From Oikopleura dioica (Eukaryota > Animalia > Chordata): 64,000 nt of DNA. The position numbers and the translations under genes were made by a program. Below the pieces are notes generated by a model. It had not been told where the DNA came from. It saw only the letters and a list, made by a program, of their open reading frames with translations, and did not search any database. Positions 14,049-19,479 of the stretch are shown piece after piece; position 1 is the first letter of the stretch, and every line of letters starts with the position of its first letter. The DNA is taken from NCBI GenBank assembly GCA_907165135.1, contig OU015569.1, positions 1,736,001 through 1,800,000 of the forward strand, read 5' to 3'.

Positions 14049-15324
<1,276 letters not shown>

Positions 15325-15478
15325 GAAACAAAAACTACCATTCTAGTGTTATATCCAATTATCTGTACCAACTGCTAATTACTTCGTGATTTCTGTCAAA
15401 TGTTAAAAGACATCAATTCCAAAAATTCAATTTTCAATTTAAATTTTATTTAATTTCAACGAATTTCAATTGATAAAA

Positions 15479-17612
15479 ATGACTTCAGAGAAAATGGGAG
15501 ACCGGAGAAGCACGATCGAGGGAGAGTCATTTTTCATGGAAACAGCTCGAGAGCTCCTCAGAGATAAATACATACTCATCATTGGCGATTCAGTGCAGGG
15601 GTGTGCATTCGGCTCTCGGGCATTCGGCTGCCCGACAAATTTTTCGGGCAAATCAGGTTCGGCTCGGCTCTCGGTCGGCTGGTGACCTGAAATTCTCTCG
15701 GGCAGGTTCGGGCAGGCTCGGGCATTCGGGCAATTCGGCCCAATCTTCGGGCAACCGGGCACCCGGCCAAAGTTAGAGAGTAAGAAAGAATTTTACAGAG
15801 ATCTGTGCTTGATTCTTCGACTGATATCTACCAATAACCTTATAAATTGATAATCCAAAATTTTGCCATCAGAAATTTGGCCGATTTTCCTCAAAATCGG
15901 TTGTTTTTTGAGCTCAGATTTATATTAATTTTCCGAAAATCATTGCCCGAAATGCCCGAAAATTAGCCCAAATTGCCCGAGCCGAAAGTTGAGCCGAAGC
16001 CGATTCGGGCACTTCGGGCACCTCGGCTCGGCTCGGCTTTCGGCCGGCCCAACACTGATTTTTCGTTTCGGCTCGGCCCTCGGTCGGCCCGACACCCGAT
16101 TTCGGGCCGAATGCACACCCATGATTCAGTGCAGGTACGTTATTTGAATTGAAATCAAGGAAGAGTACGAAAGTTAACAAATACCATCTAGCGCTGCGTT
16201 TACAAAGACCTGATTGCGCTGTTGGAGGACGGTTGCATGATGACTGAGAAGGAAAAGCGAGCGAAGTTGGAGCCCTGTTATAGAGGCGATCGACTGGTTG
16301 CGGAGACAGAAGCTTGCAACGGAACGCACTTTTGCGAGGTTCGCGAGTGGCGAGGTATTCCGAAGAATGAAGCGTGGGAAGATAGTATTCTCATTAGATT
16401 CATTTTCACAACGAAAGTACATAGGAACCGGTTATCAAATACAAGAGATAGGACCCGACTCAGATAGTTCTTCTCTTATAATTTTAAACCGGGTTGAAGC
16501 GACGCATTGGAAAATATGATCACTTTGTACACGGAGGATCATTTTCCCGACGTAATTTACATGCAGAGCACGTTTTGGGACATAACCAGATACGGAGATG
16601 GCATAGAATTAAACGGACAGCGATTTTTCCTCAATACACCTGGAATCTCCGTCTATTGGTCGATCACGTGGACAAATTGTGGAAAAAGGAAGAGTTGAGA
16701 CGCGCAGAACATGTGCGAAATCATGGACCGCCGGCAAATCCTAGAGATTTAGATCGGCCGTTGAAGATTTGGCGCAGCGCTCTTCCGATCGGCAGACACG
16801 CACGGGGAGGATTGTTGGTCAAAGAAGTGCGTTTCGGCGAAAACTCCGAGGCCTTCCGCGTAGACATGGGCTTCGCGAACATCGCCGCGCAAAAAGTGAT
16901 AGCCACCACTGACTGGGATTACTTGGACGCGCACTACATTTACCGAAAGATCCAAAACACGGACAACTTTCGGGAAGCAGATGGCGTCCACTGGAATCAA
17001 CTTGCTCATCGCTGGCTCACGTTTATCTTTCTACAGCGAGTGTGCAAGCTATGGCGTTACAAAATCGAGTCATCGCCTGAGGAACTGGCAAAAATGTTCC
17101 AAGACGTGGCGAACAGAGCCTGCACCGAGAGACCAAAACATAGAGGTGAAAAAAGAAAAGACAGATCTCCTAGTGTTGATCGAAAAAAGCGTCGATCAGA
17201 GAGCAACAGCCGAGGAAACCATCATGACGGCCGTGGTGGAAATCATCACAATCGACCAGTGCATCACCATCGTGACTCGACCCCGAATCACGGAGACTGG
17301 AAGCAGACCTATCAGCCTCCTTCCAGCGGATGGGTACCTACGCCTGTCCAAACCAATCGTCACAACCCGTTCCAACAATTGCCTCAATCAAACCCCTTCC
17401 AACAACGGCCACAGAGTCATGGCTGGGGCCCCGTCCATCCTCCAAGACCTCACTTACCGCCCCCGGGACCTCCTCCTCGATATGAGCCTCCTCCAAGGCA
17501 GCATGTGCCTCCTCCAAGGCTCCAGTACCATCCTCCAGGTCCTTTCAGACCCATTTTAACCCCACCTCCACCGCCAAATTCCCAGTCTTACAACAGATAC
17601 GGAGAATTTTGA
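15479..17612 (+). CDS. PCED1: PC-esterase domain protein (PCED1/FAM113) with His/Pro-rich tail; interrupted by a MITE and an apparent frameshift
   Basis: ILIIGDSVQ|RCVYKDLIALL (GDS motif), IRFIFTTKV, PDVIYMQSTFWDITRYG, DGVHWNQLAHRWLT (DxxH), followed by a low-complexity Pro-rich tail ending at 17612. Confidence 0.82.
15596..16123. mobile_element. hAT-like MITE (528 bp, 8-bp TSD ATTCAGTG) at the 3' end of PCED1 exon 1
   Basis: TIRs CAGGGGTGTGCATTCGGC and GCCGAATGCACACCCATG. ATTCAGTG at 15588-15595 and 16124-16131. Subterminal arrays of TCGGG/CCCGA-type motifs flank an AT-rich core. Confidence 0.9.
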
Positions 17613-17827
17613 TCCTGTTATTTTTCTGCTAAATATTTCTCACTGTCTGCCTTCATTTTTATTGATTTTTTACGGATAAAAGAAAACATTGAAACTCAAG
17701 CTCACGATAAATAAAACACTTGCTGAACAAATAAAAAAGGAAATAGTGATTAGTTCGAACTTTTTGAACTGATCCCTAGTGGCCCAGGAATTGATTTGGA
17801 TCTACGGAATATACTTTTATTTAGGCA

Positions 17828-19479
17828 TTATTCGATATTGGTGAACGTAACTGTGAGAATGTGGAAAGTGGAATGTGAAAAATTGTTGGCAGGAGTACGA
17901 TTTCGAACGTTTCAGAGTTCTAAGGAGTCGTCGGCGATATCGTTGTGGAAGAGACGTTGATTGGGAGTCGGGTCCGGCGAGTTGAGCTAGAATAGTGGCT
18001 ACTTTTTTAGTGTAGAAAAGGAGTCGCTTACCTTGACTTCTGACAATTGCATCCTGAGTCCAGTCGAGTTGCGCCCAGATTGTCCTCTCTGCTTGTCGAA
18101 TATTTTTTTCACGAAGTCTAAAAAACTTAATCGCTATTTCAGAAGGAAACTCATGCCTGGTGTGACTTCTTGCTCTAGCTGAGGATTGAGGGTTGTCGGA
18201 GTTTGAGGAGGAAGATGATCATCAATGTCTTGTTCCTGGAGGATTGCTTCCTTCTCCACCACGTCGAGTATTTGCTCGAAGAGCCTTTCCTCCGAATGCT
18301 CTTCTGCTGCTGCTTTTACTTCTTCGACTTTGCGTTCCAGAGCGGCCACTTTAGTCGCCATGTCTCGCTCGCACTTTGCTTGGTAGTCGCTAATGCCGGT
18401 TATTAAATTATTTATTAATCAAGAATGCCCATACCTAGCGAGCTCTTGGAGCTGCTTCGAATTGTGCTCGTTGATTGAGCCTAGGAGATCGCGAAACTTC
18501 GCACAATTCTTGGCGATTACACACTCTAGCTCGTGAACTTTTCCGTCAATCGGCACTTTGTTCGGTTTGACTTCGGCCTTGAAATTGGGAAAAGTCTCGA
18601 GCGTGTCGCAAATTTGCTCTTGTGCCTCGACCAGTGACTTTCTGAGCTTGCCATTTTCGTCGGAGAGCGAGCCGATCTGTTTCTGAAGCCGGTCGATGGC
18701 CAGTGCGCTTGTGTTGCCGTTGCGAACGGAGCCGGCGGCTAGAGATCCTTTCATGTTGATAACGAGCTCCATTTTCGCTCGTTTCTCTCGAGTACTCGGC
18801 CTGAAACAGAATAACCACTAAATCGCAAATGGTTCTTTACCCTCTCGACAAGTCGCTGAGTTTGTCCTTGAAGCGGCCGTTCTCTGATTCAAGCTTTCTC
18901 TTGTCGATTCTAAAATATTCAAGTTAGTTTCAGACGAAAACTTTGACGCATATCTAACTTGAACTTGCTGTCCTGGTTCTTGAGCGAAATCGACAACTTC
19001 TTTGCTTGTTCAGTTTTTTCTCGCAATTTCAATTCGAGCGAGTCAATTCTCTTCAAGTGCTTGAGCTCTCGTGCTCGCGCATCGTGCAGAAGTCGCTCCA
19101 GCTTCTCGATCTCGTTTTCTTGATTCTGCACTTTCTGATTCGAGCTTTTCAATTCCAGCTGCTGCTTGCGGTACTCTTCGTTGATTGCAGAAACGCGATC
19201 GGTTATTTTCCGCTCTCGGTCCAGCAAGCTTCTCAATGCGACTCCGACTTTTTCTTGGTCCAAAGCGCCTTTTGGAAGGAATTATTGACTGCAAATAGCT
19301 CAAATCTGCATATATGCACTTATGGGCATCAGATCTATGAAGACAATGAAATCCGTTCCTGATAGCAAAATACCATCCATCCCGTTTGCTATCAGTCGGC
19401 TGTTGAGCGAACCAAAGGGGTGCTGAGCCTCAAACACCTCTTCCTCATCGAGACTGTCGAAATCGTCGATGAGCGGCAT
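17828..19479 (-). CDS. Coiled-coil protein with ADIP-like domain (SSX2IP/Msd1-like); 3' end approximate
   Basis: MPLIDDFDSL.. (ATG after TTTCAG), SLNSRLIANGMDGILL, then a long coiled coil VALRSLLDRERK...QDSKFKLD..KRKLESENGRFKDKL. This resembles the ADIP-domain pattern by eye only. Confidence 0.5.

Follow-up and report, generated by a model that had tools for sequence, protein, structure and literature searches.

The stretch of DNA analysed here (the window, 64,000 nucleotides of the larvacean Oikopleura dioica) contains a PCED1-like gene that lies downstream of a gene for galactose-1-phosphate uridylyltransferase (GALT), an arrangement that is also found in three wild marine-metagenome contigs (L001-L003). 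In a homologue search, the last exon of the PCED1-like gene gave a 100% match to the public protein Oidioi.mRNA.OKI2018_I69.XSR.g13735.t1, which identifies the window as part of the X-specific region (XSR) of the Okinawan O. dioica reference. Between the two genes, a 26-nt block (15372-15397) keeps 96% identity in the Bergen genome and in a second lineage, although the sequence around it cannot be aligned there; it might be a conserved signal for regulation or processing.

The gene had originally been named PCED1, and a PCED1-like identity is borne out by two features. The clusters nearest to its orthologue P0002 are those of PC-esterase domain-containing protein 1A (score 0.96, with 194-200 of 256 features shared), and the first exon terminates in YILIIGDSVQ, the block I GDS motif. 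From these sequence features, g13735 can be described as a PCED1-like esterase of the SGNH (GDSL) type, and neither its exons nor the full-length orthologues gave a hit in Pfam. SGNH hydrolases in general use the Ser of the GDS motif as their catalytic nucleophile. With this motif at the extreme end of exon 1, the enzyme should lose its activity if exons 1 and 2 are separated. A paralogue of the gene, which was not found within the window, shares 36 identical nucleotides of the exon-1 end (15564-15599, ...ARALLKNKYILIIGDSVQ) and then diverges into an intron of its own, as revealed by loose contig ends at 15564 and 15599 in two DNA runs (X3 and X5).

These two runs, the first of them from the probable source study of the reference and the second from a different study, were compared as reads or contigs with positions 14300-18800 of the window, together with two RNA runs (X14 and X25). 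Genomic contigs of the second lineage (L004-L006) and of the Bergen reference (L007), and an mRNA contig of the orthologue in the second lineage (L008), were compared with the window as well.

Gene structure and the public gene model

The coding part of exon 1 (MGDRR...YILIIGDSVQ) extends from 15494 to 15598 on the plus strand, like all the gene features described below, and was delimited by tblastn with P0002 and by the mRNA contig L008. The sequence from 15479 to 15598 reads MTSEKMGDRRSTIEGESFFMETARELLRDKYILIIGDSVQ; past 15598 the frame runs into GGGGTGTGC..., and coding resumes only at 16192 with RCVYKDLIALLEDG.... Immediately before this point lies the original intron 1 (16135-16191), of 57 nt and with the form GTACGT...CTAG, which follows a displaced CAG at 16132-16134 and whose GT-AG position is conserved in all the other lineages examined. 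Exon 2 (16192-16424) runs from RCVYKDLIALLEDG to FIFTTKVH plus AG, as placed by tblastn with P0002 and exon modelling.

The start of the transcript can be read from L008, whose first 19 nt have no counterpart in genomic DNA and equal the 3' end of the spliced leader (SL) of O. dioica; minus its first C, this stretch is printed in PMC6883708. The gene is thus SL trans-spliced a few bases 5' of the ATG. In the window, the trans-splice acceptor is likely, from the sequence, to be the AG at 15487-15488. Such an acceptor would make the ATG at 15494 the start codon, and the upstream ATG at 15479 would probably lie outside the mature mRNA.

Intron 2 (16425-16499) is a non-canonical GA-AG intron that reads AG/GAACCGG...TTGAAG/C (slashes mark the splice junctions). 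Exon 2 ends with ...GTACATAG, followed by GAACCGG, and exon 3 begins after ...GTTGAAG. The junction was placed by comparison of the mRNA contig L008 with the genomic contig L005 of the same second (sister) lineage, and the donor AG/GA[AG]C[CT]GGTT is conserved across L001-L007, including the lineages that are only about 75% identical (L004-L007). Many RNA-supported GA-AG introns have been described in O. dioica, with AG upstream and A downstream of the donor (PMC7072748), and non-canonical introns represent 11% in the OKI2018_I69 assembly (PMC8008620). Intron 2 fits both the description and this share. The original claim that the genome tolerates donors other than GT therefore stands, G-non-T donors being accepted and a conserved GA-AG intron being present in the very same gene. 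GG-AG introns are a minor class in O. dioica.

Exon 3 (16500-17612, through the stop codon), defined by tblastn with P0002 and exon modelling, is open only if the run of T at 16624-16628 has six residues. The window shows five (T5) and hence an apparent frameshift; six (T6) are found in X3, X5 and L001-L003. The T6 version reads ...NGQRFFPQYTWNLRLLVDHV..., collinear with ...NGQRYFPQYSYNLRQLVDQV... of the orthologues, and together with the revised exon model it encodes 488 residues without a break if the count starts with the ATG at 15479. The T5 run is an assembly error or a private change, and probably an uncorrected Nanopore error. It had been suggested that this frameshift might betray a dead allele; for the population this is refuted, since T6 is present in every other sample, including X3, which carries the insertion described below.

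The public model g13735 (P0001, 348 aa) differs from this structure in two places. It starts at the ATG at 16111 (MHTHDSVQ...), within the right inverted repeat of the inserted element, and it jumps from ...CEVREWR to DRPLKIW..., skipping about 400 nt of genuine coding sequence (about 16350-16760) and so avoiding the T5 run. The model is wrong at both places and needs correction.

The inserted element and its empty sites

What separates the end of exon 1 from its original intron is a 528-bp non-autonomous hAT-like element (15596-16123), a MITE with strong internal self-complementarity, to which, as to its repeats and flanking duplications, no strand is assigned. It is flanked by two direct copies of an 8-bp target-site duplication, ATTCAGTG, the left one (15588-15595) still coding, as part of D-S-V, and the right one at 16124-16131. 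Its terminal inverted repeats, CAGGGGTGTGCATTCGGC on the left (15596-15613) and the reverse complement CATGGGTGTGCATTCGGC on the right (16106-16123), are 18 nt long and match at 17/18 positions. The first three bases of the left repeat re-create the Gln codon and are followed by the GG donor proposed at 15599, and the right repeat holds the start ATG of the public model (16111-16113). The left terminus, CAGGG, fits the hAT motif YARNG; the right terminus, CATGG, has a T at the R position. With an initial CAGG and a final G in the element, the identity between the two direct repeats grows from 8 to 13 nt (GATTCAGTGCAGG, at 15587-15599 and 16123-16135).

In contigs that stem from other family members, the match to the window sets in exactly at 15596 and breaks off at 16123 or 16124, leaving loose ends. 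These shared ends fix the boundaries of the element and assign the CAG to it. The repeats and the empty sites thus bear out the original view of a transposon that inserted just 5' of the last codon of exon 1 with an 8-bp duplication, and the ends of the other copies confirm that the Gln codon is rebuilt by the terminal CAG of the element. The positions first given for the old junction (16132-16140), the acceptor AG (16190-16191) and the stop at 15683 (TGA) were all correct as well. This TGA (15683-15685, plus strand) is, by translation, the first in-frame stop if the element is kept in the mRNA.

The element has no credible open reading frame, only spurious ones, and no second copy of its 528 bp occurs within the window. 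A 363-nt contig internal to the element was obtained from X3, with no differences and at a depth about 4 times the baseline, which points to a handful of near-identical copies and to a young family; the perfect target duplications are in keeping with this youth. A long hairpin structure (-238.5 kcal/mol, z -8.35) is predicted for the RNA of the element. A match of a hairpin inside the element to mir-8521 in Rfam fell below threshold (30.7 bits, the gathering score being 80) and was taken as chance.

Alleles free of the element are found in other samples. In X5, a 14.9-kb contig that spans the locus lacks exactly 536 nt of the interval from 15586 to 16123, the breakpoint being ambiguous by 13 nt, and thus represents an exact empty site. 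The wild contigs L001-L003, which were reached by a search with exon 2 and share 97% identity with the window on either side, read ...GGCGATTCAGTGCAG/GTACGT... with no interruption (more fully, ...ATTGGCGATTCAGTGCAG/GTACGTAATTTG...CATCTAG/CGCTGC). One exonic difference between the window and L001 is A/G, in the Arg codon that precedes DKYILI. Both X5 and L001-L003 hold a single copy of ATTCAGTG at this site, and they match exactly the pre-insertion sequence that had been reconstructed from the window. In the second lineage (L004-L006) and in the Bergen reference (L007), both about 75% identical, a short GT-AG intron is located at the same codon boundary and the element is absent; the mRNA contig L008 confirms the junction GDSVQ/RCVYK.

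By contrast with these empty sites, contigs of X3 that start in unique flanking sequence reach 29-30 nt into the element at each of its ends. Because this run gave no empty-site contig, X3 is a carrier, which may share the culture or even the animal with the reference and is not fully independent of it. The reading frame of this carrier is otherwise intact. The source of the reference assembly was a single male (PMC8008620). As the gene lies in the X-specific region, this male was hemizygous and had the filled allele alone. The insertion is real, recent and still polymorphic in the Okinawa lineage.

Fates proposed for the filled allele

Three outcomes can be considered for the transcript of the filled allele. 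The one favoured here, with rather more confidence than doubt, is that a young polymorphic insertion, 3 nt upstream of the exon 1/intron 1 junction, has produced an allele that is probably null or weakened and that the hemizygous male could tolerate. When donors are ranked by their matches to CAG/GTAAGT, as counted from the sequence, the old donor at 16135 is intact and matches at 8/9 positions; it is by far the strongest, and the old 57-nt intron would most likely still be removed as before. Its recognition would be expected where introns have a median of 49 nt, as they do in this genome (PMC8008620). With the element thus retained in the mRNA, translation would run only as far as the stop at 15683, leaving a null or strongly weakened allele. 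A null allele could be tolerated if the gene is dispensable or backed up by a paralogue, a role that may fall to the one seen in X3 and X5 that shares 36 nt of the exon-1 end. The identity between the CAGG of the element and the displaced CAGG would most simply be explained by chance, a typical hAT end happening to resemble the sequence that is most frequent at exon ends. In the published RNA-hinted model, the element is not annotated as an intron, and the start codon lies inside it. Retention of the element is nevertheless an expectation and not an observation, and the maturity of the hemizygous carrier male, along with the presence of the allele in two culture samples, fits a harmless allele equally well as a tolerated null.

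For the Okinawa culture, PMC8008620 describes three MiSeq RNA libraries of 2020. Run searches found no RNA run of the species carrying the words of this gene. In X14, a bulk RNA run of 2026, 13 partial reads with 90-95% identity match only the conserved DRPLKIWRSALP block, and they flank it with coding sequence of the orthologue type (RDRDRP... before it and ...GGLLVKEIV, as in P0004, after it); their divergence indicates that the run comes from another O. dioica lineage. These reads cover the conserved DRPLKIWRSALPIGRH block at 16761-16801 with orthologue sequence on both sides, so that the orthologue is expressed in that lineage. X25 gave one contig of 275 nt, restricted to the last exon. 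The 68-aa read-through ORF had no exact match on record, and the homologue searches yielded nothing beyond the published model and unspliced metagenome ORFs, with no Okinawa protein derived from a transcript. Since the mRNA of an empty allele is identical to a rescued one, the junction test first proposed, reads with 15598^16192, cannot by itself separate the alleles, and a known carrier such as a hemizygous male is required.

The original prediction had instead proposed that the element is removed scarlessly as a GG-AG intron and that normal protein is made, an outcome that is possible but regarded here as unlikely. On paper, precise removal can be achieved by joining the GG at 15599 to the AG at 16133-16134 or to that at 16190-16191. 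If the 536-nt deletion is slid through the 13-nt repeat, GG (15599) with AG (16134) is the sole pair of a donor beginning with G and an AG acceptor that restores the wild-type mRNA, the direct version ending at 16191; in terms of sequence, GG...AG would be the only scarless removal. Three routes would yield the same mRNA: direct splicing (15599-16191), stepwise splicing (first 15599-16134, next 16135-16191), or removal of the small intron at the outset.

Several further observations favour this outcome. Donors of the G-non-T type are tolerated in this species (PMC8008620, PMC7072748), intron 2 of the gene being GA-AG. The hemizygous carrier male was viable, and the reading frame of the carrier is otherwise intact. 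The match itself is improbable, as a CAGG after the target together with a G before it would occur by chance at about 4 in 10,000 at a random site of the window. It is less striking in view of the enrichment of exon ends in CAG/G and of the CAG with which hAT ends typically begin, but it could still reflect the survival of only those insertions that can be rescued.

Against these points, the GG at 15599 matches the donor consensus at 5/9 positions, lacks the GT and would have to compete with the strong old donor. The donor reads GGTG after the GG, with poor pairing to U1, and a GT is located two bases downstream (15601), which also matches at 5/9 positions and is canonical, though out of frame. 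In the predicted hairpin, 15599 and the bases that follow pair with 16106-16120, which would bury the GG site in a perfect inverted-repeat stem. The RNA-supported GA donors have an A downstream (PMC7072748), and the site at 15599 has a G. The resulting intron would measure 593 nt, against a median of 49 nt (PMC8008620), and it does not appear in the published RNA-hinted model. Taken together, sequence and predicted structure make an efficient use of the GG donor rather unlikely, and scarless rescue by GG-AG splicing is considered doubtful.

The displaced CAG/GTACGT (16132-16140), which the original proposal likened to a recursive ratchet point, adds no evidence for recursive splicing, itself rather unlikely from sequence and structure: it is the native donor, left unaltered, and the same form arises wherever a CAG precedes a donor. 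The sequence upstream of it (CACACCCATGATTCAGTG) is not a pyrimidine tract.

A third outcome, judged slightly less probable still than scarless removal, is that the filled allele gives an altered product by some other route, namely the GT at 15593, 15674 or 15601, a start within the right inverted repeat, or trans-splicing farther downstream. The nearby GTs had been dismissed as out of phase, which is right for 15601 and 15603 but overlooked the in-frame GTs at 15593 and 15674. Joined to the old acceptor, the former would drop Val-Gln and the latter would add 25 residues. Initiation in the right repeat would give MHTHDSVQ..., as in the published model P0001, which starts at the ATG at 16111; SL trans-splicing to a downstream acceptor would give a protein that lacks the GDS block. 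The mRNA of the orthologue is SL trans-spliced, which brings trans-splicing acceptors into play here. The GT at 15593, however, matches only 3/9 consensus positions and is present yet unused in the empty allele, the junction falling after CAG in the mRNA of the orthologue from the sister lineage. A protein deprived of the YILIIG of block I would probably have no activity, and this outcome therefore overlaps with the null allele favoured above.

Finally, although the Nanopore-based reference does contain errors (as with T5 at 16624-16628, which is T6 elsewhere), the possibility that the insertion is an assembly artefact is effectively refuted by the short-read contigs of X3, which join both unique flanks to the element ends, and is further contradicted by the perfect target duplication and by ends that coincide with those of other copies.

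Related systems and significance

The element shares with hAT MITEs an 8-bp target duplication, short inverted repeats that start with CAGGG, a small non-coding body, several near-identical copies, presence/absence polymorphism and a clean empty site. It departs from them in its right end, which is CATGG rather than CAGGG, and in the lack of any observed autonomous partner or transposase. Duplications of 8 bp are also produced by the P superfamily, to which the element may belong instead of to hAT.

Introners are said to have been described as transposon-derived introns by Huff et al. in 2016. They are treated as such by Gozashti et al. (2022, PMC9860276), and MITE-derived non-canonical introns are reported for another larvacean, Fritillaria borealis, in the summary that PMC11282704 gives of Henriet et al. 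(2019). The likeness to these introns lies in a short inverted-repeat element that sits in a coding region of a larvacean with a relaxed splice code, and in an element end and a target duplication that here, on paper, allow precise removal. Unlike them, the element of the PCED1-like gene is known from DNA, and it abuts an old conserved GT-AG intron, which it would only enlarge. The introns of Fritillaria belong, moreover, to the AG-AC or AG-AT classes, whereas a GG donor is required here. A literature search found no report of MITE-derived introns in O. dioica.

As in the recursive splice sites of Drosophila and vertebrates, CAG/GTACGT could serve in turn as acceptor and donor. It differs from those sites in being the unchanged original donor with no upstream pyrimidine tract, and in that the putative acceptor would lie beside an inverted-repeat stem. 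A resemblance to ordinary disruptive insertions at splice junctions is found in the youth and polymorphism of the element, in the premature stop upon read-through and in an old splice signal that is displaced but intact. What sets the insertion apart from these is that the last codon of the exon is rebuilt, by coincidence or by selection, and that scarless rescue is formally possible.

The meaning of the insertion for O. dioica depends on which of these fates applies. If the element is not spliced out, the filled allele is one more disruptive insertion allele. The alternative, judged improbable, is that the spliceosome of carriers removes the element exactly, from the GG to the old acceptor and possibly in two steps through the displaced CAG/GT. 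Were this true, a 57-nt intron would have grown to 593 nt with no loss of function, and the locus would be a live polymorphic example of CAGG-ended hAT elements turning into neutral intron sequence in O. dioica. It would also be a rare instance observed during its polymorphic phase, with the empty and filled alleles of one intron on a hemizygous chromosome of a culturable chordate with a relaxed splice code, and it would offer a direct measure of a transposon becoming a harmless intron.
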